A DNA stretch of 64,000 nt from Malacoraja senta (Eukaryota). Shown here one piece after another: positions 447 to 64,000 of the stretch. A model generated the notes under the pieces. The model was not told where the DNA came from, did no database searches, and saw only the letters and a program-made list of their open reading frames with translations. Every line of letters begins with the position of its first letter. Positions within the stretch are counted from its first letter, which is position 1. The position numbers were made by a program, and so were the translations under genes. The DNA is taken from contig JAXLNO010004831.1 of assembly GCA_038087875.1 (NCBI GenBank), forward strand, positions 62,001 through 126,000, in the 5' to 3' direction.

Positions 447-1954
447 ACCCAGATATTTTTATTTCTTGTTTCTTATATTGTTTACAGTGTACTATGTTTA
501 CATATTCTGTTGTGCTTGCTGCAAGTAAGAATGTCATTGTTCTATCTAGGACATCTCTATATAACTAAAAGTCTTTGGCTTGTTTGTGCCCACGGTGTGT
601 CTCTGTGTGTGTCAATCTGGTTAATTCCTATCTTCTTCCTAATGCTAGTTCACAGCTTTCTCATTTTCACACGTCGTACTCACATTTTCCCGTGGTGGCG
701 ATAAACATCTTCCCGTCACATTTCCACCTATATTTCCGAAGTTATTAATCGTTAAATTTTTTTAAACAGTCTGATTTCTTCAAACTCTTCCATTTTGGAA
801 ACAAAATCCGAGTGACTTCACAATGCACTCGCAAGGTAGGACAGGACCACTCCAGGAGGGATAGGCACTCCAGTGCTCCAACCCTCCCTCCCCCCTCCCC
901 ACCCCCCTCCATTGCACCAATCACGATGGGCTCTCAAGCTGCCGAGTGCCACACCCCCTGCCCCCTCCCCCTCATCATGATTAAAGTTTTTTTTTAAGCC
1001 AAACGGGTTGCGTTGGGGGAACGGATGAGTACTGGAATATTTCGTTGGGGGAGCAGACCCGGTCTGCACTTGGTCTAGTATGACAATAAAACAATATTGA
1101 CTCTTGAATGTACATAAAGTATCTTTGGATTCTTTGCCAGAGTTGACACCAAAATTGATAAGTATATTAGGTAATGATAATTGTTGTCTAAGATTACAAA
1201 ATAATTTTGATCAACCGGAAAGGTATGGAGGTGAGGGGATGGGAGGTGAGGGGGTGTGGGGAAGGAATGCCAATTGAAATCTAACTCAAACAAGTGTGAT
1301 TTGATGCCTTTTGGGAAGTCAAATCAGGGCTGGCCAAATCTATTGCAGGATTGTAAATGGAGCTGTACCTTGGTGTACAATTACATAGTTCCCTGAAAAT
1401 GGCATCATAGTTTGATAGGGTAGTGAAGGGAATATATGTCTGAAGAATCGCCTCGACCCAAAACGTCACCCATTCCTTCTCTCCAGAAATATTGCCGCTG
1501 AGTCTCTCTAGCTTTTTGTGTCTATCTTCGGTTTAAATTAGCATCTGCTGTTCATCCCTACACAGAGTATATGTTATGCCTTGTTTCCTCAGCCATGGTA
1601 CTGAGGACTAGGGTTGGGGTGTCGTGTTACAGTTGTACAGAATGTTGAACAGGCAACCATTAATCTGTCCAGGGGCTCAGCTGATTTGTTGCACAATAGA
1701 CTCTAATCCAAGGTCTGAACTCTGAAAAGAAAATCAAGAAATTCAAGTTGCCACTCATCCAGGGGCTGAATAACAAAACACATCTTAGTTTTGCTTATCT
1801 GGCTTGAGAACTCTTAACATTGATCTATTTTCCTTCATAGTGTACTCCCTTTATAAAATGGCCATTCCCAGACATCTATCCTGTGTCCACACTGTTTTCC
1901 AAGGGCACCTCACCTATTTACAGCTCTGCTCTCAACAAGTATCAATCACATTAT

Positions 1955-2085
1955 CCCTCTCTCTATCTATCACCTCCATCTCACTATATCTCTCTCTCTC
2001 TATCTCCCTATCTCTCTCCATCTATTTATCTCTCCATCTCTCATCCCTCAGCTCTATCTCTCTTTCCTTCATCTCTTTCATTTCT
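1955..2085. repeat. Degenerate (TC)n/(TATC)n pyrimidine tract
   Basis: Direct inspection. Confidence 0.85.
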
Positions 2086-2321
2086 GCAAATTGAAATCAT
2101 TAATCAGTCTGAGAGCACTGTGTGTGACTGAATGACATCAGAGCATCAGTCCCTGAGGCATACCACTGGTCACAGGCTTCCTATGTAAAAAAAACAACCC
2201 TGCACTACCATTCTCTGACTCCTACCCCCAAGCCAACTCTGTGTCCAATTGACTAGCTCACCCTGGATCCCATGTTTTCCAACCTAATGGACCAGCCACC
2301 CATATGGGGCCTTGCTGAAGG

Positions 2322-2632
2322 ATGGCATGGTGGCATAGTCGTAAGGCTACTGCTTTACAGTGCCAGAGACCTGGGTTCAGTCCTGACTACAAGTGCTTTT
2401 CTAAATGGAGTTTGTACGTTCTCCCCGTGACCTGCGTAGGTTTTCTCCAAGATCTTCGGTTTCCTCCCACACTTCAAAGACGTACAGGTTTGTACGTTAA
2501 TTGGCTTGGTATAAAAGGTAAAATTACCCCTAGTGTGTGTAGGGTAGCGTTAAAATGTGGGGATCGCTGGTCGGTGCAGGCCCGGTGGGCTGTAGGGTCT
2601 GTTTCCTCACTGTATCTCTAAACTAAACTAAA
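2322..2632 (+). mobile_element. tRNA-derived SINE (HE1/V-SINE-like)
   Basis: Pol III box-like head, central GGAGTTTGTACGTTCTCCCCGTG..GGTTTCCTCCCACA domain, tail CTGTATCTCTAAACTAAACTAAA. Confidence 0.85.
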
Positions 2633-2876
2633 CATAGACAACATCTGTCATCCAATCACACACTGGGCAATTTACAAAATTCAATTAACCAACCAACTCG
2701 CATGTCTTTGAGATATAGCAGGAACGGAGCATTTGGTGGAGATCCACGTGTCATAGGGAGAACAAGAAAATGATACACGTTGTACCCGAGATCAGGATTG
2801 AATCCAAGTTGCTGTAGCAGAGGGGCACCAATTCTGCCAGTTGCCTCAATGTACTGCCTTTTAAAAAGAAAATTGA

Positions 2877-3186
2877 AAGCCTATCCCACTGTACGAGGTA
2901 ATTCAAGAGCTCTCCCGAGTTTAAAAAAAAATTAAACTCGTGGTAAGCACGTAGAATGTACGTAGCGGGTACGTCGGAGCTCGGGAAGTCTCCTAGCGGC
3001 TCGTAACGCTAACGGCAGGTACTTGGGAAACGCGGTAAGCTCGTGAAGACTCGTGAAGATTTTTCAACATGTTGAAAAAAGTCCACGAGAGCCCCAAGTG
3101 CCTACGACCGGCAATTACCGTAATTCTCCGAGTTCAAATCAGGGGAAACTCGGGAGAACTCGCTCGTACAGTGGGACAGGGCCTTT
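2877..3186. mobile_element. MITE with TIRs related to the Harbinger-type family
   Basis: GCCTATCCCACTGTACGAG ... CTCGTACAGTGGGACAGGGC inverted ends, CpG-rich noncoding interior of ~310 bp. Confidence 0.7.
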
Positions 3187-3231
3187 AAGCTGTGTCTGCG
3201 TTGTCCAAGCACACACTCTCAGGGCAGAATT

Positions 3232-3540
3232 AGTTTAGTTTAGTTTAGAGATACAGCGTGGAAACAGGCCTTTCGGCCTACCAAGTTTGCCAAGACCAAT
3301 GATCCCTTTACATTGGCACTACCCTACACACACTAGGTACAAATTACAATTTACAAACCAATTAACCTACAAACCTGTACGTCTTTGGAGTGTGGGAGGA
3401 AACTGGAGCACCCGGAGAAAACCCATGCGTTCACCCAACATACAAACTCCGTGCAGACCGCACCCATAGTCAGGATCGAACCCTGGTGTCTGTTGCTATA
3501 AGGCAGCAACTCTACTGCTGCGCCGCCCTGCCGCCCCTAA
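3232..3540 (-). mobile_element. tRNA-derived SINE (HE1/V-SINE-like)
   Basis: Reverse complement of the same family, with the (TTTAG)n tail at 3232-3250. Confidence 0.85.
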
Positions 3541-3940
3541 GTATAGATATAGGGAAAGATACAGCAGCCTGAAAACCGTGACAACCAGATTCAAGAATAG
3601 CCTCTTCTCAGCAAACATCAGGCTCTTCAACACCACACAAAACTAACTTCAGCATCTATGATCATCTGTCTTTGAATGTAATATGAATTTAGTTTTTTGC
3701 ACTATTATGATAGTCCAGTATTACAGTTATTAATTTATTGTTTTACTGGTTGTTTTATATTATCTCTGTGTTATTGCAGTTACATGCAGGTGAAGCTGCA
3801 GCAAGTCAGAATTTTGTTGTTCTATTGTTGATACATATGACAATTAAACGACTCTTACCTCACATTTGATCTTGGGTAAAGCTCACTCCATATTACCCCC
3901 ACCATACACTCAAGAAAAGTACAAGGAACAAGTACATGTT

Positions 3941-10433: not shown

Positions 10434-10487
10434 ATGATGAGATCCTGCTTTGATGTTGGTGAAGTTTGGCTCAGTTGCTGCTGTTGA
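10434..10487 (+). promoter_or_regulatory. Candidate uORF (MMRSCFDVGEVWLSCCC*) whose TGA overlaps the leader ATG (TGATG)
   Basis: ATG at 10434 and TGA at 10485-10487, sharing the A of the ATG at 10487. Relevant only if transcription starts upstream of 10434. Confidence 0.3.
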
Positions 10488-10559
10488 TGCGTGAGGTTGT
10501 GCGTGAAATGATTCTGTTCATCTTGTTGAGTTTCTTCCGCGTACAAGGGGCTGAAGCAG
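10487..10559 (+). CDS. MHC class I-like gene, leader (signal peptide) exon: MREVVREMILFILLSFFRVQGAEA-G (second in-frame ATG at 10508)
   Basis: Hydrophobic core ILFILLSFF followed by an A-E-A cleavage motif. The exon ends in phase 1 at CAG|GCAAGT (GC-type donor). Splicing to 33848 gives AEA/GPHTLIYY, matching the mature class I N-terminus G-S-H-S-L/M-R-Y. Too short for the ORF track and 23 kb from the next exon, so the link is inferred. Confidence 0.72.
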
Positions 10560-10832
10560 GCAAGTTAATGATTCTCATTTTATTCGCTACTGGCTAAAAG
10601 CGTCTTGGCTTTATCTCAATCTTGACCGGAGGCGACTGAGTTTAAAAAAGCGCGCAATACACATTCAGTCTGGTTCATGGTTCACGTTAAAAGGGTTTAA
10701 TCTCCCCTGTTTCAGTACAATCCAGACTGGAATTTCTGCATTGATTTGCACAATGCCCCGTTTCCTCTGTGGAAGAAGGAACTACAGATATTGCTTTAAA
10801 CTGATTTTAACTCGTGTAAAACAAACAGGAGC

Positions 10833-33847: not shown

Positions 33848-34108
33848 GACCTCACACACTGATCTACTACTACACCCTGAACCACGGGAGTACTCATCTA
33901 CCAGAATATAGTGTTGTGGGTGTCATGGACGGTTGTGAGATACAGTATTATGACAAAAACATGGTCATTACAGTTCCAAGACAGAAATGGATGGCGGCTG
34001 CATTTGACAGGAATTACTGGGTAACAAATACGGTCTCTGAAACTGGTTTCCATGGAATCATCAAAGGGCAAGTCGATGAAAGGATGCGGAGGCAGAACGA
34101 AACAGCAA
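33848..34108 (+). CDS. MHC class I-like alpha1 domain exon (87 codons)
   Basis: Acceptor ttttctttgtgtctag|GA, donor A|GTTAGT, 261 nt, phase 1/1. Translation GPHTLIYYYT..LPEYSVVGVMDG..YYD..PRQKWM..YW..RRQNET shows the class I alpha1 motifs (Y7, DG, PR.W, YW, R84, N86 glycosylation sequon NET). Confidence 0.95.
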
Positions 34109-39575: not shown

Positions 39576-40223
39576 CATTTCGGCTATTTGTGGTGTTTCT
39601 TGAAAACACGAAGACGAGAGAATGTAAAGGATCTGCAGAACAACTGAGAGACTGCAGAAAGCAGCTTGAAAAGAAGGCTCTTCATCTATAAAACATAATT
39701 ATTTTTTATTCAGCTATCATTGTTTGTAGAGTTTCTTATTGGAATGAAAACATCATCCAAGTTTGAACCTTCCTTATTACGCCTGGTCCCAGGGGCATGG
39801 TTGGCATTAGCTCATTACCTTCATCCTAATAAAGGGTTGGTGTTCACAGTTGTGCCTAGGTTTTTATCAATTATAACCTTGAGTTCACAAACTGTTCTTT
39901 GTCTCTGGGCTAAAGTTCACAGACTCTCCTTTTCAAGGAGTGAGCAGTTTTAAGCAAACTGACCAGCAAATCCTTACAAATTCCATCACCCCCCCCCCCC
40001 CCACTTTGATTCATCAACCAATGCCAGAGTGAATGAATCATCTAAGTAAAGGGGCCTGTCCCACATACGTGTCCTTGGCCGCGATGGTCCGGGATGGTCC
40101 GGCGAAGGTCGGGCGCGATTACATGCGTACGCACAGCCGTCTGGAGCACGTGACATAATTTGAAGATTGACACAAAGCTGGAGTAACTCAGCGGGATCGG
40201 CAGCATCTCTGGAGAGAAGGAAT

Positions 40224-40257
40224 GGTTGACGTTTCGTGTCGAGACTCTTCTTCAGTC
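40224..40257 (-). ncRNA. Minimal hammerhead ribozyme motif (second well-preserved core)
   Basis: Minus strand CUGAAGA-A-GAGUC-UC-GACAC-GAAA-C-GUC-AAC: intact core, palindromic ACGU stem III, one stem II mismatch. Confidence 0.6.
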
Positions 40258-40486
40258 TGAAAAGAAGGGTCTTGACCCGAAACATCACCCATTGCTTCTC
40301 TCCAGAGATGCTGCCGGTCCCGCTGAGTTACTCCTGCATTTCGTGTCTATCTTCAATTTTCTTGGCCCCGCTCTTTTTTTTTTTTTTTTTTCCGTAAATG
40401 TTTTTTTTAATTAGATTTTTAAACAAATGTACAATTTACAAGGAAGGGTAGAAAGCTCACACAATTTAAAAAACATTTACACAAAA

Positions 40487-43400
40487 TTAACAAATTAAAA
40501 TATTAACATTTTTATCTATAATATATTCAACCTCCTGCGGTGACCAGCGTTCACAGAAGGCCTCCACAGTCCCCGTGAACACCGCGTGTTCCCTCTCTAG
40601 GGATACGCGGGCACGGACGTAACCCCGGAAAAGGGGCAGGCAGCCGACCGCTGTGCGGCCATCGACCGCCCGCTGCCTGGACCCGCGAATGGCCATCTTG
40701 GCCAGGCCCAGGAGCAGTCCGACAGGGAGACCCCCTCCTCCCTCCCGACCCTCCCCCCTCTGTACCGGGTGCCCATAGATTAATAGCGTTGGACTAAAAT
40801 GTAGCCAAAACTTGAGGAGCAGCCCTTTCAGATACTCGAACAGGGGCTGCAACCTCTCGCACTCTATATACACGTGGAACACAGTCTCTTCCTCACCGCA
40901 GAAATGACACGCAGGGGAAGAGTCCGTGAACCGGCTCAAGTACCTATTACAGGCCACGGCTTTGTGCAAAACTCTCCACCCCGGGTCCCCGATGTAAAGG
41001 GGGAGGACTCCCTTGTAGAGAGACCTCCACTGGGGACCGCTCCCCTCGTCAGGTGGTAACACGGACCGCCAGGGTGTGTCTGAACGGAAGACGAGGGCGA
41101 GGAAGTGGAGAGTGTGCAAGAGCAGCCTGTACAGTACGCGCCTCTCCGCGCCACGGAATGGCACACTGGGCATCTCAGAAAGGCGGCTCATGTTGCATGG
41201 GGCCGGCTCTCGGGGAGGGTCCCGGGCCATGGGCCCTATGAACAATTCCGACTGAGCGGGGGTAAGCTCGTCCGGAATCGCTCCATGCACACGCCTCTCC
41301 TCGACACCCACCGTCACAGCCACGACACCCCCCTCCCCCTGAGGAGCAGGGCCCTGGCTGAAGGTGACCAACTTCCTGGCCTTCAGGAGTTCACGGTAAA
41401 AGCCAGGCAACTCCCGCCTAGCGCGTCGACTCATGCCCGCTACCGGGAGCCGGGAGCACCCCTGAAGGCACCGTCCCTGACGGAAAAAGTACGTCGCCAG
41501 CACGTGCCATTTAGGAGGGTAGTCCGAGTAGACGTACCTCCGCAGGGTCCTGAGTCGGTGAGCCGCCACCTGGGTATGAATACAGACCAGCGCCTGACCA
41601 CCCTCCTCCAACGGGAGACTCAGAACCCCAGCAGAGACCCAGTGGTTCCTCTCCCCCCAGAAGAAGTTGACCAATCTCCTCTGTAACATGGTTATAAAAT
41701 AGGAGGATGGGACCATAGTGGCCATCCGGTACCACAGCAGAGAGGCCACCAGCTGGTTTATAACTACATCCGTGCCCCGGTAAGAGAGCACACCAAGTAG
41801 GCCTGACCAACGTCCCAGCCGGGCGACCACTTTCGCCTCCAGCTCCTGCCAGTTCGCCGGCCACCCCTCCTCAGCGGGACTCAGGTAGACCCCCAGATAG
41901 AGGAGGTGCGTGGTACTCCACGCAAAACCTGCCATCTCCTCCAGCAGGGAGTCCACCTGCCACCCACCCATCAAGAGACCAGAACACTTCCCCCAGTTGA
42001 TCCTGGCGGAAGATGCAGCCGAGAAAACCTGCTGGCACTCACGCATCCTCCGCAGGTCACCAGGGTCGGTGAACATCAGAAGGACATCATCGGCGTAGGC
42101 CGAGAGAACCACCTCCATCCCCGGCCCCGGTAAAGCCAGGCCTGTCAACCGCGAAGGCACAGGAAAGGCTCGACACAGATGGAATACAGCTGGCCGGACA
42201 TGGGACATCCCTGACGAACCCCCCTCCCAAAGGGAATGGGGGCCAACAAAGAGCCGTTGACCTTAACAAGGCATTCTGCAGCAGTATATAAAAGTCGGAC
42301 CCAGGCCACAAAATGCGGTCCCAATCCGAACGCCTGCAGAGTCCCAAGAAGGTAGTCGTGCTCCACCCTGTCAAACGCCTTCTCCTGGTCGAGGGGGAGA
42401 AAGGCGACCGACTGACCAGCCCCCTGGGACAGATGGATCAGGTCCCGGAGCAGATGGATATTGTCCTGGATGGACCGGCCCGGGACTGCGTACGACTGGT
42501 CAGGGTGGATCACCTGGGACAGCAAGGGACCCAGGCGATTCGCCAATGCCCGTGCAAAGACTTTATAGTCCGTGCTGAGGAGAGAGACCGGGCGCCAGTT
42601 CTTCAAAAGGCGAAGATCGCCCTTCTTGGGCAGCAGGACAACAACTGCCCTGCGCCCAAGAGAAAGGCATCTCCCCGGTCGCCAGGTTCTCCCCCAAGAC
42701 CTTCATTTAGTCGCCCCCCAGGACATCCCAGAAGGCTCTAAGGTACTCCACAGTCAGCCCATCCAGCCCTGGAGACTTGCCCCTCCTAAGCTGGTGCAGG
42801 GCAACAGTCAACTCCTCCAGAGTTAGGGGATCATCCAGGTGTTCAGCCACATCATTGCACACAGCGGGTAAGCCCTCCACTGGACTTCTTGCGCCTCCCC
42901 ACTCGATGTGCCAGCCGAGAACAGAGTCCTGTAGAACGACCGAACTGAGGCACCAATGCTCTCTGGATCTGTGACAGAGGAACCATCCTCCGCAAGCAAC
43001 TCTACAAGCTGCCTGCTGGCTCCTCGCCCCTTCTCCAGAGAAAAAAAAAGGGGGAGGCGCGGTCCAGGTCGTGCAACATCTGGACCCGCGACCTCACATA
43101 CGCACCCCGGGACCTCCTAAGCTGCAAGTCCCTCAGTGCTCCCTTCTTCTCCTGGTATTCCTCCCACTCACACGAAGCCCCACCAGTCTGATCCAGGCGA
43201 GCCTCCGAGTCGAGCAACTCTCTCTCAAGCCGTCCGATCTCGGATTCCCGCCCCTTGGTCGACCCCCTCGCATAGTCCTGGCAAAACTGACGGACGTAGA
43301 CCTTCCCCACGTCCCACCACTGCCTTAGGGAAAGGAAACGCCGCTGCCTCTCTCTCCACCTCGCCCAGAACTGCCTGAATGAATCCCGGAATCGGCAATC

Positions 43401-44158
43401 CTCCAACAGCTGGCTATTATAATGCCAGTACGCGGACCCTGCCCGTGCGCGCGCTGGGATAAAGTCCACTCGCACCAGGCAATGGTCCGAGCATGGCGCC
43501 GGCTGCATGGAGGCCGCCGAAACACAGGAGACATAGGCCTTGGACACGTATAAATGATCAATACGGGAACCACCACCCTCAAACCTGTACGAGAAGGCGT
43601 TAGAGTCAGGATGGAAATTCCGCCATGCATCTACCAGCTCAAAAGAGTCCACCATCTCCCTCAAAGTCTTCACTGCTCCCGGGTCACGCTGAACGCCAGA
43701 GCGATCTCTTGTCTCGAGGGCACAATTAAAATCTCCCCCAAGGAAAACACACTCCCCACGGTCGATAGTGTTCAACAACGTGGTCACTTCCCTTGTTAAG
43801 CGCGTCTGCATTGCGCCGATCTTGGAGGCGTACACATTAACGAAGTGTAATGGCACACCATCCAAGCGCACGGCCAGATACAGCAAACGGCCTGGTACAA
43901 CCCTCTGCACTTTGAGGATCTCCGGCTGGAAAGACGGGGCCAACAGGAAGGCTACTCCACTCGATTTGGAGCTGAGATGACTCATGTAGACCCCCCTTCC
44001 CACTCCAGGAGCCATGTGGGTTCATCACTAGCCACAGTGTGTGTTTCCTGCAGGAAGCTCACCGCATACCTCCCGTCCCTGAGTACTGAGAGATGGTGAA
44101 ACCTACGGAGAGACCCCCTGCCCCCATTGATATTCAGGCTGGCTATAGTGAGCTTCAT
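40487..44158 (-). pseudogene. Tx1 ORF2 (AP endonuclease + reverse transcriptase), disrupted
   Basis: MKLTIASLNING (ATG overlaps the ORF1 TGA), FLQETH, GGDFNC, RIDHLY, SDH (APE). KSPGLDG, NWRPVSLL, LDQEKAFDRV, GVRQGCPMS, AYADD (RT). Several frameshifts and at least one in-frame stop near 42710. Confidence 0.9.
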
Positions 44159-46255
44159 TTTGAAAGTACACTAGATCTTTTACCCGTCCCCGGTGATGGA
44201 TTGGAGCCTACCCTACCCTTCTTCCCTCTCTTTAGGGCCTTAAAAAGCTCTTGGAACTGGCGCCTCTCATTTCTTACTAGCCCCGCCTCATTCCCCTTCT
44301 TCTGAAGGATGGCATGAATGGACTGCATGGGCGCCATCAGGTCCGACCAGCGGTCAACAGCCAAATCCACCTTGTTCCTACTCCCTCTAGTTTCCTTTAA
44401 GAACTTCCGAAGTTCCCAGACTTCGACAAGTCGAGACACGGGGCCGCGGGTGGAGCAGTCGGTCAACTCACTGTCAACGGACTCCGCGTACCCTTCCTCC
44501 TCGCACTCAATGTCCGAGCCCGAGTCCAGAAGGTTACTACTCTCAGCCGCCTCGCTCACCCCTCCCTGTGAGGTGGGCATTCCAGCCACATCACACAGTC
44601 CCTCCTCTGTCACCATCCCACCCCCAGGATCAGTGACAGGGGCAGGTACCAGTGCCTCTGACCGCGGCAAACTATCTGACAATTTGCCAGTCTCCTGCAC
44701 GCTCCCATCGCCCTCTGTAACCGGATTGGGAACAGTGAAGTCAGAGCAAGTCTCCGGGCCTTGCTGTAAGCGGGTCTGTCTGGAGTCCGACCTAAGGACA
44801 CGATCCAAAATGATCTTGCCCTCCTCCGCACCCAGGGTATCCGCCCCTGCACCGTCACCCAGAGAGTCCCCGTCCCCCACCACCAGGTGAATCACCCCAC
44901 TGTGGCCCTCAGGGGCCGATGTTACTGGAGTCTCCCCTGCTCCCTGAACCAGTGGGGCATCACACCCCTCAACTGGGCTTGTAGCCTCAACGGGGAGCTC
45001 ATGTTGGGGACCCACCCCCTCACCCAAGTCCCCCCCTTCAGGCTGCCCCTGGTCATCCACTAAGCTAGCAGACGTGTTTTCTGGGGGAACAGCCCCCAAG
45101 AGCAATATATCTCCACTCTCAGGTGGTCCCAGACCTACAGAGGCATCCTCCCCCTCAGAGGAAACGTGCCCTGGGTACCCCACCTCAACAGGAGGGGAAG
45201 GCTCCCCTTCAGGTTGCCCCTGAACTTCAGTGCCCTTCTCTGTATCGGAGGACCCATGCCTCCTCCTCTTCGTAGCACTGGCGTACGGTGGTACGGTGAG
45301 CTCCATTGCAGAAGCCTCTACCTCCACACTACCGTCTATCTCAGAGGCTAGCATGAAATTATCTGCTGCCTGGGGTCCCGCTTGGAGGTGATCATCTTCT
45401 AGGGGATCAGCCTGGAGATGTTTCTTCTTTTTCTTGACTTTCCTCCCCTGCTGATGCTCCCAAACCTTCCCATCCACCCTACGCACTTCTCCGGCATCCA
45501 CCGCCACAGGTACGGGACATGGGGGTGGTGGGGGGATAGGGGTTGGGGGTAGGGGAGTAAAGCCTTCACGGGCCACCGTGTTAAAACCAGCAGCCCCAGA
45601 TGGGCCAGTTGTGCTTTCCCGTGCCATCGTGGTGGAACTGGCAGCCCGGGTCCTGGGACAATTCTTGCGAAAATGCCCCACCTTTTTGCAAGCGTGACAA
45701 CGCACTTGGCCCGCATTTCAGAACACGCGATAGGAGAAATCATCCACCTCCACCTCAAAACTCCCCTCCGTGTCCGTCCCCTGTGCCAACTGTATATACA
45801 CGCGACGCTTGAACGTATATATATGCTGCATCTCAGGATCGTCAAACCTGTACAACAGTTTGGTGAGCCCTGACCGCACCTCCCCCAGCTTCCTTACATG
45901 TGGGAGCAGGAGCGCATCCGGAACAAAAGTGGGAACGTTGGACAGAATGACCGGCAAAACGGGACCCCCCCATGGGACCACCGCCGCAAAACCCCCCTGC
46001 TGTTACCCCCCTTTCCAGAGCCAGAGCCACCGCCTGTTCAGTCTTTAGTAGAACCACAACCTTCCCACTGACCACCGCGCCCGAGACTATGGCTTTCTTG
46101 CCAACAGTCTCACCCAACGCATCTAGAAAGGCCTTTAAGGGCAGGTTGCTCTGTATGTACATTTTTACACCATATGTGCGCCCCATCAACTCGTGGCCCT
46201 CAGTCTCGGAGACTGCCGACCGTGCAACAGCTGCATAACTCTGAGGGGCCGCCAT
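44155..46255 (-). pseudogene. Tx1 ORF1 (gag-like, CHACKKVGHFRKNC zinc knuckle), frameshifted
   Basis: Starts MAAPQSYAAVAR at 46255 and continues through ORF-track segments 45718-45981 and 44155-45705. C-X2-C-X4-H-X4-C knuckle followed by a long low-complexity acidic/proline region. Confidence 0.85.
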
Positions 46256-47569
46256 CTTTAGGGCGTGGCACAACACACAAAGTACCAGTAGTTTATATCC
46301 AAAGCAGTCTTTCTGCTGTTGCTGCACCTCCACTCTTTTGCAGCAGTTAAATAGTCTTGTGAAGGCTTTCTTGGTAAGCAACAGAAGCAGTCTCCTCCTG
46401 ATAAGATAGGAATGTCCGTGCCAATCCTCCCCGTCGTCAAAAATGGAGCTTCCTTATGCTTCTTCCCCAGGCCTCCGGCGCCTCCCCGGCTTCAACGAAA
46501 TCCAAGGCACTGTTGCCGTTCTTACCCAGCCCACCTGGACCGGGCAAGTCGGTGTAGGAGGGAGCTTTCCGATGTTACTGACCACAAACACCACTCTAGA
46601 CTCAGCTCCCACTCGTTCAAGTGCAACTTGGCCTTCCGCCAGCCACTGCCGCTCCTACGACTTTACAGATACACGGACAAATCCTCCCTAATTAGAGGAA
46701 TCTTTGAACAAAGAAAGTCTCTGCAGATCGACAAAACTCTGAACTGCAAAGTCTGACTGCTTTTGTTTCTCCCCGCCAAACAAAACCTTCCGAAAAGTTC
46801 ATCAAATCCTCCCCGCCAGCAGAACAGCTCCTCACCTGGCCCCGCTCTGGGAGTAGAAGTGGGGGCGGATCTGGACCACAACGGCCGTGAGCCCCAGGCC
46901 GAGCTCGGCGATCGTTTGCCTGCTTCTGCTGTTGTTGGAGGTGAGACGTTGCGTCGCGCCAGGGCCTTGGGCCTGTCCCACTTTGGCCGTCAGTTCCGCG
47001 ACAGGCCGTTGGCGCGCGAAGATTTCGTTCACTACAAAATTATTGGAGCCCCGCGCAATGTCGCGCACAACTACATACCCCTCCGCGCTTCTCAGTGAGA
47101 CCGGTCCCGCGCGGCCATACAGTGTCCGTGAGCCTCAACGCGACCACGAGGTCACATAATTTGTGTGCCAAGGACAAGTAAGTGGGACAGGCCCTTAAAA
47201 ATACAAAGGAAGGGTAGCGCAGCTACACATCACTGGATATCTTTAACCTGTTCAATCACTGGGTATCTTTAACCTGTTCAATGCCAACGCCGAGTACACT
47301 AGGGATCATGACCAATAGTGAAAAATAAACTTGGCAGTGAACAGCTTAATGGTCTCCATATTTTATAGAAAGCCTTCAATGCCCATGAGGGGTGAGCCTT
47401 ATTATATCTATGTTTCTCTAAATATAGGAAGCACTTTTGTGGTAAAAGATGGGGCAGCTCGGGCCTCGAAAAGATCCAACCTTATGTGTAGCTTTACATT
47501 TGTTTATATGCAATAAGCAAAAAGAACACAATAGAAGATAAAACATGATAATAACTATAAGCAAAGCCA

Positions 47570-54354: not shown

Positions 54355-54630
54355 ATTATCACTACGTTCAAGGACAGTTTGGTTGTGAGGTGGACGATCA
54401 CCGTCCCACTGTAGGGATATTGAAGTTGGCTTTTGATGGAAGATATGCATTTAGTTTTGATAAGGACAAACTAAAGTGGACGGTGCATGGTCCAATAGCT
54501 GAGCCCTTCAAAGAGAATTGGGACAAGAATGAAAAAATGAACCGTTATTTCAAGAGCTTGTTAGAGCATGACTGTGTGGATCTATGGCTTACATACTATG
54601 CAATTGGAAAGACATACCTGACCAGAAAAG
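54355..54630 (+). CDS. MHC class I-like alpha2 domain exon (92 codons)
   Basis: Acceptor tttttatttcag|AT, donor AAG|GTGAGT, 276 nt (the usual alpha2 size), phase 1/1. Motifs QGQFGCE (C101), AFDG, W133, W147, LEHDCV (C164) and GK..L.RK. Confidence 0.95.
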
Positions 54631-60050: not shown

Positions 60051-61352
60051 TGTACGGAGGTAGTGTGTAAAGCTTTGTTTTGCATGCTATCCAATTGGAT
60101 GAGGTAACAAAATACATATATATGATCATCAAACTCAAGAACTGTAGGTAGAGCAAAGGGGAAGGTACAGAGTGTCGCATATAGTTCTCAGCAATGTAGC
60201 ACACCAGTTCCATTAGATAAGGGTTTCGACACGAAACGTGACACATTCCTTCTCTCCAGAGATGCTGCCTGACCCGTTGAGTTACTCTAGCATTTTGTGT
60301 CTATCTGCGGTTTAAACCAGCATCTACAGTTCCTTCCTACATAGTTCTATAAACAAAGTCCACTGTCTGTAATGGGGTAGTGGTCAATTGGACAGTACCC
60401 TAGCTTATGGAACGATCATTCAGAAGCCTGATTTTCTCCTCGGTTATCAAGTTTCCGAGTAAGCCATTTGGTCCTCTATCCTGCCCACCATTCAATATGA
60501 CCATGGCTGACGTTCCTCAGGCACCAACTCCTGTTCGATGTCAGTTCCTCATTGCACTCAGTTCTCCAATTTAAGTTTAAATTAAGTTAACTACCGCCAC
60601 ATTAAATGCTTCCAATGATTTTGTCTTCACAAATCTCTGGCGCCAGAGAATGACCACACTCTGCAAAAAGAGATTTTGTAAACAAATGACTGGTCTCTTT
60701 TATCTCTTATTGAAGAGGAGTGAAAATACTGCCAATTTTAAGCTTGTCCCCTCCCCAATTGACCCTCATTTCGTAAGTTGTCAATTATTTATTATTGTCA
60801 ATAATATGCCCTAGTGAAAAGATTTGTCGTTGGTATTAGTTTATTATTGTCACGTGAACTGAGATATAGTCAAAAGTTTGTCTGTGTGTTATCCAATCAG
60901 ATCATACTACACATGTGCAATCAAGCCATCCACAAGTAGAACAGTGCAAAGAGAAAAATATTCAGAGTGCAGAATATCGGGTTACAATATCATAGCATTA
61001 CAGTTACAGAGAAAGTGCAGATCAAAAAGAGTTGCAAGGATCACAATGAGATTGGTTGGAAGATCAGGGCAACATCTTATCTTACATGAGAACCATTCAG
61101 TAGTCCAATAACAGTGGGGAAGAAGCTGTTCCTGAATTTAATTGTACGTACTTCCAAACTTTCTTGTGTACTGTCTTAACAGGGAGCATACAATCCCTTT
61201 TAAACCACGTGTTTTGTTGATGGGACGAAAGAGGCAAAATGGGGCAGATGTGGACAGTAACTTGGTTGTTGTAGTAGACTGAAGAATATTTTGTGGTGGG
61301 TGACTGTGCAAGTTTTACTGAAGATGAAAATAACCATCTTACTGTCTTGTAA

Positions 61353-61619
61353 TTTCCCCTGAGGTCACTCTCGCTGCCCGCCCTGATGACCATTCAGTCC
61401 TGTACTGCACTGTGTTTGGATTTTACCCACCGGCCATCAATGTCAGCTGGTTGCAGAATGGTCAACATGTCTCTGAGACCAAATCTTCTGGGGTCATACC
61501 CAACAACGATGGAACATATCATCTAAGGTCTGTCCTTGAGTATGATCCGTATGATGGGAAACAGTATTCCTGTCATGTCGATCACAGCAGCCTGCCCGGT
61601 GGGAAGACCATCATCTGGG
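61353..61619 (+). CDS. MHC class I-like alpha3 (Ig C1-set) exon, 89 codons; expected acceptor reads AA rather than AG
   Basis: VSPEVTL..LYCTVFGFYPPAINVSW..PNNDGTY..YSCHVDHSSL..W, with both Ig cysteines and the FYP motif. Donor TGG G|GTAAGA. The phase-compatible start at 61353 is preceded by ctgtcttgtAA. Confidence 0.9.
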
Positions 61620-61959
61620 GTAAGAACATTAAATATTCTTTCATAGATAATCATTATCTTCTGTTGTTTCCATTTTAATCATCATGAATACATCCCATAT
61701 TCCAAGATGCTTAAACTTTCTTTGTTTAGTGGTGTTGCTCTAAGTAATCACGTAATCAGCACCCATTCTCCACATGAGCAGAAGACTTTGTCAACAGAAC
61801 ATTTATCAAAAGTAAATAAATAACTAATATATAAGGAAGGAGTATTTGAGATTCTCAGTGGTGGAACTGAAATCTATGAAAGGTATGTTTAAATACAAAA
61901 TTAATCTTTCCTCATGATGTGATTAACAACAAGGCACTGGGGGAGTACATGCCCCAATC

Positions 61960-62600
61960 TGAATCATTGGTCCGAAGTGGAAATGATTGTGAGCTTCATG
62001 TTCCTTGGCATGAATTTATCCAATATTCTGTCATGGACTGGCCACATAGCCAAGGAGGCACACCGACACCTCTACTTCCTCAGGAGACTGAGGATATTCA
62101 TCATGTCTCTGGTGACTCTAGCAAACATCTATAGATGCCGTTAGAGAAAGCATGTTGTTGGGTTGCATCACATCTTGATTGGGGAACTGCACTGCCCAAG
62201 ACTGCAAGAATATACAAAGAGTTAAAGATCATCACACAGGCCAGACTTCCCACTATTGGCTCAATCTCCACCAGGTTGCCTTGGAAAACAAGACTTATCC
62301 CAACCTTCCTCCTTCTTGCTCCCATCAGGCATTAGGTACAGAAAGTTGAAAATATGCACTGCCAGATTCAGGAACACCCCCTTTCCACCTGTTAACAGGC
62401 TTCGGAAGGGTCCTTCCATAATGTAGGTTTAATGCCCGATTCACCTCAACCTCATTGAACATTGAACATTGTCCATGGAACTGATGTGTTACAATGCTGA
62501 GAACTATATTCTGTACTCTGTATCCTCCTCTTTGCTCTATCTATTGTTTTTGAGTTTGTATTTATGTATAGTTTTATAATTTGTTTGGATAGCATACAAA
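61960..62600 (+). mobile_element. Decayed Rex1-type LINE 3' fragment
   Basis: Nucleotide match to the CTACTTCCTCAGGAGACTGAGG..GCATCACA region of the other Rex1 copies, plus the typical 3' UTR. Confidence 0.65.
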
Positions 62601-64000
62601 ACAAACCTTTGCTCATATTTTGAAACATCTGGCGTTAATAAAACTAAACCTAATGAAGTAAGTTCCATGACGCAAGTTACAGATTCAGCAACGAAAAATA
62701 TAACTGCCTGACAAACAACGATCGTAGTAGTTTGATTCCAAGTATGCTGCACTAACCTACACAAATGCTCACTTTTGAAGATTCCCTCGAACAATGCACA
62801 ACTAAGGAATCTGATGTTTCACTCTGAAGACTGTTGACATACTCCAGAACTTAATTTCCAACCTATCTATGTATCATCAGCAATCTAGGCTACAGCGCCA
62901 CCAGTCCCTTCATCTGCTCTTAATACCAACGATAAGTAGTTCACTTTCTTGCATTGATTCCCAACCTGCAGTTGCAGTTTCCCAACCAGAACACTCCTTT
63001 AAGACAACTCTCTGCTTGCTCTTAATTGTTTTTTCCATTCATGCTAATTATTACCCCCAATGTCATAAGCCATGTGCCTTTGCATCACTTGATCAGATAT
63101 CTTATGAAAATCCAGATATTGTGCGACATCTGGTGGTCAGGCCACTTATTGCTAGAACCCTCGTCAGGGGAGCTGGGACTATCACGTGAGTGACAGGGTT
63201 TTGGTGGGAGTTGGTGATGAATCAGTCGCCAGTCAACTGGTGTGCCCGATAACAACGGCAGGAACTTTGCTCAAGTCCTTACTAAACGCGAGTGTGCCAA
63301 AACTGTATTTCTTTAAAAAACATTGATTTGTTCACGACGTTTGGATCTCTACAATATACTGTATTTCTTTTGTTTCTCATTCCAATTTTGTTACCTATTC
63401 TGCTTTTCCATCATTTTGTTTTTGAATTTTAGACTATGTACACCTGCTGCTCGAATATACATTGTCTACGGGGTTCCTGTTGCATTTTCAAAGAATTCTA
63501 ATCAATTTCTCAAACAAAGTTTGAAGAAGGGTCCCAAAACGAAACATCGCCTGTCCATGTGTAAGAAGAAACTGCAAATGCTGGTTTACACCGAAGATGG
63601 ACACAAATTACTGGAATAACTCAGCTGGTCAGCCAGCATCTCTGGAGAAAAGGAATAGGTGATGAATCCATGTTCACCAGAGATGCTGCCTGTTCCGCTG
63701 AGTTACTCCAGCATTTTGTGTCTATTATGTATATTCTTTCCACTGACTGGTTAGCACGTAACAAAAGCTTTTCACTGTACCTCAATACATGTGACAATAA
63801 ACTAAACTAAAGCTTTTGTGTAAATCAGTATCTGCATCTCTTTCTTTCTACAATTTTCCTGTTAATGCCCTGTTAATGCACTTTATAGTTTTGTTATTAC
63901 TTAAATGTTCTGCATTATTGAAAGGAATCCAGCATTTTCCCCAAAACAAATGTTAGTTTATATAGGGTTAAAGCTTTCTGCTTTCAATTCACCTTCTTTC

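Follow-up and report, generated by a model that had tools for sequence, protein, structure and literature searches.

Class I-like proteins and splice forms that lack an alpha3 domain exist, among them ULBP/RAET1, EPCR and HLA-G4. These evolved without alpha3 or use regulated splicing, unlike the gene described here, in which the alpha3 acceptor is broken. The gene can also be set beside the splice-site pseudogenes and null alleles of MHC class I families, in which an open frame is disabled by one splice-dinucleotide change. Like the members of MHC class I birth-and-death families it has many paralogues; unlike those pseudogenes, its lesion lies in a non-classical lineage of skates. Sharks and rays possess UFA and UGA genes that are CD1-like and lipid-binding, for which a crystal structure exists, and that are said to be single- or low-copy (PMC12562908). 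The relatives of our gene resemble the elasmobranch UFA/UGA genes in having a YQNI/YQTI tail, in the replacement of T143 and Y159 and in a structure, 9CH4, and UFA/UGA is a candidate label for them. In contrast to the low copy number described for UFA/UGA (PMC12562908), at least 10 close paralogues are found in Rhinoraja.

A class I gene in the window and its lineage

We searched the window, the whole 64,000-nt stretch of rajid skate (Rajidae) DNA analysed here, for exons by a stop-to-stop scan and by tblastn with related proteins (P0001 and P0177 among them). The leader, alpha1, alpha2 and alpha3 exons were each found as a single copy on the plus strand (Table 1; a slash marks a splice boundary throughout). 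The alpha2 open reading frame matches Pfam MHC_I (E 7.1e-12) and alpha3 matches the C1-set family (PF07654, E 3.3e-20); the translation of alpha3, read from 61355, runs from VSPEVTLAARPDDHSVLYC to YSCHVDHSSLPGGKTIIW and is a C1-set Ig domain. The gene therefore has the make-up of an MHC class I heavy chain, with MHC_I-fold alpha1 and alpha2 domains followed by a C1-set Ig domain. The disulphide cysteine pairs are present in alpha2 (C101-C164, GCEV...DCVD) and in alpha3 (C203-C259, LYCTV...YSCHV). There is one domain per exon with phase-1 introns, the TM exon being known from relatives. All joints are phase 1: the last G of alpha2 joins TT to give the V of VSPEV, and the alpha3 exon ends in TGG G/gtaaga. 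The introns measure 23, 20 and 6.7 kb, their Amblyraja counterparts 32, 11 and 20 kb. Over its last part (61620-64000) the window stays colinear with the Rhinoraja intron until about 300 nt short of the TM exon in that gene, so the exons for the TM and tail should fall just outside the window.

Table 1. Positions in the window of the exons, splice sites and private codons of the class I gene
Feature	Position	Strand	Detail
Leader (signal peptide) exon	10487..10559	+	Encodes MREVVREMILFILLSFFRVQGAEA+G, phase 1; tblastn with P0001/P0177
Leader donor	10560..10561	+	GC, CAG/GCAAGT; GT in five relatives
Alpha1 exon	33848..34108	+	261 nt; acceptor tctAG, donor A/GTTAGT; phase 1/1
Alpha1 private W>R codon	34081-34083	+	AGG in window copy
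Alpha2 exon	54355..54630	+	276 nt; acceptor ttcAG, donor AAG/GTGAGT; phase 1/1; Pfam MHC_I
Alpha2 private D>G codon	54489-54491	+	GGT in window copy
Alpha2 private K146>N codon	54516-54518	+	AAT in window copy
Ancestral alpha3 acceptor site	61351..61352	+	AA in window; AG in Amblyraja, Leucoraja, Rhinoraja (two genes) and Pristis
Alpha3 (C1-set Ig) exon	61353..61619	+	267 nt, open frame, phase 1/1; donor GG/GTAAGA at 61620-1
First AG downstream of lost acceptor	61362..61363	+	Behind tttcccctg; use removes 11 nt, giving GHSRCPP-stop
Second downstream AG	61396..61397	+	Use deletes 15 codons (VSPEVTLAARPDDHS, Ig strand A), frame kept

Two further features of the locus were observed. LINE open reading frames of 573, 337 and 516 aa lie on the minus strand at 40050-47198, inside the 20-kb alpha1-alpha2 intron, and correspond to the element previously called a Tx1 LINE. 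Reading through the alpha3 donor (61620-61678) yields GKNIKYSFIDNHYLLLFPF followed by a stop, and the Leucoraja RefSeq model XP_055486429.1 (P0180, 311 aa; locus L003) ends in a nearly identical peptide; either the read-through peptide marks a soluble isoform that retains the intron, or it is an artefact of annotation.

Relatives were gathered by an exhaustive HMMER search with alpha2 and by a word-based search. Protein identity to the window gene is 88-91% in skates, 71% in sawfish, 64-67% in stingray and manta and 58-65% in sharks; the next match falls to 38%, so that the lineage is well bounded. NCBI names its members only 'class I histocompatibility antigen, F10 alpha chain-like' or 'MR1-like', and the full-length ones carry PF00129 and PF07654. 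A search for homologous proteins with alpha3 alone as query, for matches of 49-154 aa, returned none. The lineage contains a solved structure, 9ch4_A (PDB 9CH4, E 8.6e-118), titled only 'Ig-like domain-containing protein'. In a HMMER alignment to the classical chain 5ymv_A, T143 is replaced by F and Y159 by L across the whole lineage, and the classical set of peptide anchors (T143, K146, W147, Y159 and Y171) is accordingly incomplete, with N in place of K146 in the window copy alone. The lineage is classed as non-classical because of the F and L at the T143 and Y159 anchors. The window gene is thus a member of a non-classical lineage of MHC class I that is conserved across sharks and rays and has the usual order of parts: leader, the domains alpha1 to alpha3, TM and a tail carrying a tyrosine motif. 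The TM and tail are known from relatives, in which the motif (YxxI) appears as DYQNI, DYQTI or AYENI.

The family is multi-copy, with at least 10 proteins of at least 90% identity mapping to one Rhinoraja chromosome. At the DNA level, with introns counted, the window locus shares 92% identity with the genes of both Amblyraja and Leucoraja, which are 97.7% alike, and 85% with Rhinoraja. The window gene is therefore either an orthologue from another rajid lineage or an old paralogue. Some gene models of the relatives are unusual in themselves. RefSeq isoforms of Leucoraja erinacea LOC129716032 (P0152, P0175, P0176 and P0178), the Leucoraja orthologue, fuse a GPR139-like 7TM open reading frame to MHC class I exons, probably through read-through or a mis-joined model, and the 64-kb window holds no GPR139-like sequence. 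In Amblyraja (L002) a second, diverged alpha3-like match (71478-71861; 44% identity to residues 206-328 of P0177) lies 6 kb downstream of the alpha3 exon within the same gene model.

The alpha3 acceptor and its predicted splicing

At the alpha3 boundary the window reads ccatcttactgtcttgtAA/TTTCCCCTGAGGTCACT (given also as aataaccatcttactgtcttgtAA/TTTCCCCTGAGGTCACTCTC), with cttgtAA before the exon and AA at 61351-61352. We compared it with five genomic loci from four species in which the exons were mapped exactly: two from Rhinoraja (L001 and L005) and one each from Amblyraja (L002), Leucoraja (L003) and Pristis (L004). All five have AG at the aligned acceptor (ttgtAG/TC, ttgcAG/TT, ttgcAG/TT, atgtAG/TT and ttgtAG/TT), and the window copy alone among the six aligned genes has ttgtAA/TT. 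The relatives use the homologous boundary, because their annotated proteins, and the transcript-derived Logan proteins of Leucoraja, read ...TYLTRK/VSPEV.... Since the five related genes all have AG, the A at 61352 is derived, by a G>A change of the last intron base. Judged by the alignment, the ancestral acceptor is tgtAG or tgcAG at exactly this position, and the derived base change is almost certainly real.

We put the probability at roughly 0.72 that the mutation is real and, by destroying a splice site, has inactivated one member of a birth-and-death family, making the window copy a young pseudogene or a null allele. A germline G>A change at 61352 would have turned the invariant alpha3 acceptor from AG to AA. 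The spliceosome would then take the next AG, at 61362-3, with the loss of 11 nt and a shifted frame that stops after 7 codons, which would probably lead to nonsense-mediated decay; alternatively, the alpha3 exon would be skipped. With either splicing outcome no normal heavy chain would be made from the window copy, and other copies or alleles would supply normally spliced mRNA.

The AGs around the site bear on which outcome is to be expected. Every upstream AG, joined to alpha2 in phase 1, runs into a stop, and none can rescue alpha3 because the in-frame triplet at 61350-2 is itself a stop (TAA in the window, TAG in relatives). Downstream, the first AG shifts the frame, and use of the second would keep the frame but remove strand A from the Ig domain. 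Two candidate branch points, ataAc (61333) and cttAc (61341), precede the site. It is an established rule that the first AG after the branch point is chosen, and on this rule 61362-3 is the likeliest acceptor; a frameshifted mRNA open to nonsense-mediated decay would be the most likely product. A U12-type (minor) intron was considered and rejected, for the donor of the alpha2-alpha3 intron, GTGAGTTC (GTGAGT), lacks the /RTATCCTT consensus.

These results confirm what the original prediction observed and support part of its interpretation. It had described an AA acceptor, which the AG of the five related genes now marks as a specific derived change rather than a chance feature, and a phase-1 start giving V-S-P-E-V and a 267-nt exon, which fits the phase-1 end of alpha2 at AAG/GTGAGT. 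The other exon frames were said to be intact, as they are in the leader, alpha1, alpha2 and alpha3 (the TM and tail exons lie beyond base 64000). It was also right that the nearest AGs, ending at 61323 and 61363, lead to a stop or a frameshift; joined to alpha2 they give DENNHLTVL-stop and GHSRCPP-stop. Two features escaped its survey: the AG at 61396-7, which keeps the frame, and the leader's GC donor.

It had further noted that skipping of alpha3 would keep the frame, and this is borne out: both flanking introns are phase 1, as is the relatives' TM exon, which in Rhinoraja begins cag/AA GGA. The skipped mRNA is predicted to have the in-frame alpha1-alpha2-anchor layout of ULBP/RAET1, EPCR and HLA-G4. 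The step from there to a working alpha1-alpha2-TM protein without an Ig domain, comparable to EPCR or ULBP, is one that we consider quite unlikely. A good AG with a pyrimidine run, 11 nt downstream of the lost one, should compete with skipping, and the frameshift that it causes is the outcome we favour. In addition, alpha3 is strongly conserved in the lineage and the window alpha3 has no private replacement, the window copy has other signs of decay, and a heavy chain built to pair via alpha3 would be unlikely to fold after its sudden loss.

The leader donor and other private changes

The leader donor reads CAG/GCAAGT where all five relatives have GT, a second derived change in a splice dinucleotide. 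GC-AG introns exist, and working GC donors typically have a strong consensus. The window donor has that consensus and differs from the usual GC-AG intron in that its GC is a private change from a GT kept by five relatives; the change could be tolerated, or it could add a second defect. At 10553-10561 the end of the leader exon reads GCT GAA GCA G/GCAAGT, with GAA (Glu) in place of the CTT or CTA (Leu) of the five relatives. This three-base change beside the donor replaces L by E in the signal peptide, and the four changes within 12 nt have the look of a single complex mutation or a short tract of conversion.

The window copy thus departs from the canonical dinucleotides of a functional gene at two sites, with AA at 61351-2 and GC at 10560-1, and the other 10 splice bases are canonical. 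Counted by base, two of its 14 essential splice bases are changed, and the five relatives keep all 14. At the window-specific substitution rate of 2.9%, measured in 2.2 kb of flanking intron, about 0.4 splice hits would be expected under neutrality, where the Poisson probability of two or more is about 0.06; almost none would be expected under selection. The window branch carries 4 synonymous and 8 non-synonymous changes in 792 coding bases. Its dN/dS of about 0.5, compared with about 0.3 on the functional sister branches, is indistinguishable from theirs with 12 changes. All of the replacements on the window branch fall in alpha1 and alpha2, and alpha3 has no private replacement. Seven window residues are absent from all 25 family members, including W>R, L>M, D>G and K>N, and the residues replaced are well kept in the family: W in 24/25, L in 25/25 and K (the K146 equivalent) in 24/25. 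Conservation at the hit sites is 0.63 against a background of 0.65, and 0.3-0.5 on the sister branches. The changes thus fall on positions of ordinary conservation, as relaxed constraint would give.

Each of these signs is weak alone; jointly they lean towards relaxed constraint on the window copy and argue against a lone sequencing error. The four fully open coding frames speak against a dead copy and, together with a dN/dS that 12 changes cannot separate, mean that long-standing decay is not demonstrated. The original prediction had allowed for a base-call error as well as for a null allele. If the AA came from a mistake in assembly or base calling, or from a variant that is somatic or rare in the animal sequenced, the gene would be normal; the change involves only a single base, no run is clearly the assembled individual (the best shares 0.48-0.64 of words) and a near-identical exon is normally spliced in run X23. 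Substitution errors are, however, rare in modern assemblies, and the second splice change and the 8 private replacements, all of them substitutions, cannot all be errors. We therefore regard this explanation as decidedly unlikely. The null allele survives as the simplest reading; it had been proposed without knowledge that the family is multi-copy, with at least 10 close paralogues in Rhinoraja.

RNA-like evidence and the fate of the copy

Run X23, which comprises 89 Mb of contigs, behaves as a transcriptome and has zero depth in both introns that flank alpha3. Letters 31-226 of a 226-nt contig fit 61353-61548 and the first 30 letters lie elsewhere; a 78-nt contig fits up to 61619 and runs on for 8 more letters. 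The bin depths match these limits exactly (12 x 52/67 = 9.3; 16.6 x 14/67 = 3.5), and over 266 bases the contigs show 2 differences from the window (about 99% identity). Their limits at 61353 and 61619 show that a very close organism splices an exon about 99% identical to that of the window at exactly the homologous boundaries. The normally spliced exon comes from some allele, copy or sister species, and its source copy is not distinguished by the contigs.

The start of the contig at exactly 61353 could mean that the window copy itself is spliced normally, and this counts against reading it as dead. In that case the AA acceptor would still work, by non-canonical recognition or by A-to-I editing of AA to AI, and a normal heavy chain would be made. 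An AA acceptor rendered usable by editing is known from the ADAR2 pre-mRNA, which ADAR2 itself edits, and the X23 fit at about 99% identity and the open state of all four exons seen are compatible with such an acceptor here, without singling out the window copy. We nevertheless hold a working AA to be very unlikely: the fold of 61270-61440 is no better than that of shuffles (z -1.1), no long inverted repeat was found across the 61352 site, the donor GTGAGT is not U12-type, and in a multi-copy family the X23 contig could equally derive from an AG allele, a paralogue or a sister species. Transcription of the window copy with alpha3 still joined at 61353, the AA in the genome being overcome by editing or by AG-independent recognition, is likewise very improbable.

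Genomic runs also cover the region. A WGS-like contig of run X4 spans the site (61269-61661) with 10 differences from the window. A WGS contig of run X1 (organism A), at 61226-61361, has 2 differences, one of them at 61276, and neither supports nor opposes the A at 61352. Short X1 contigs between 60400 and 62400 match the introns at 98-99% with a word depth of 1,300-3,900, compared with 36-96 in X3 and X4, as would be expected if organism A carried about a hundred near-identical copies of the locus.

Our preferred reading, an inactivated copy in a family that gains and loses members, has consequences for annotation. In a tally of the class I genes of this skate the locus should enter as a null allele or disabled copy, and its open exons are no proof of function. 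It would also provide a dated example of copy death in an expanded CD1-like lineage of sharks and rays, at about 3% intron divergence and by point changes at splice sites. If the lesion is still segregating, it would offer a natural knock-out for the study of the lineage.
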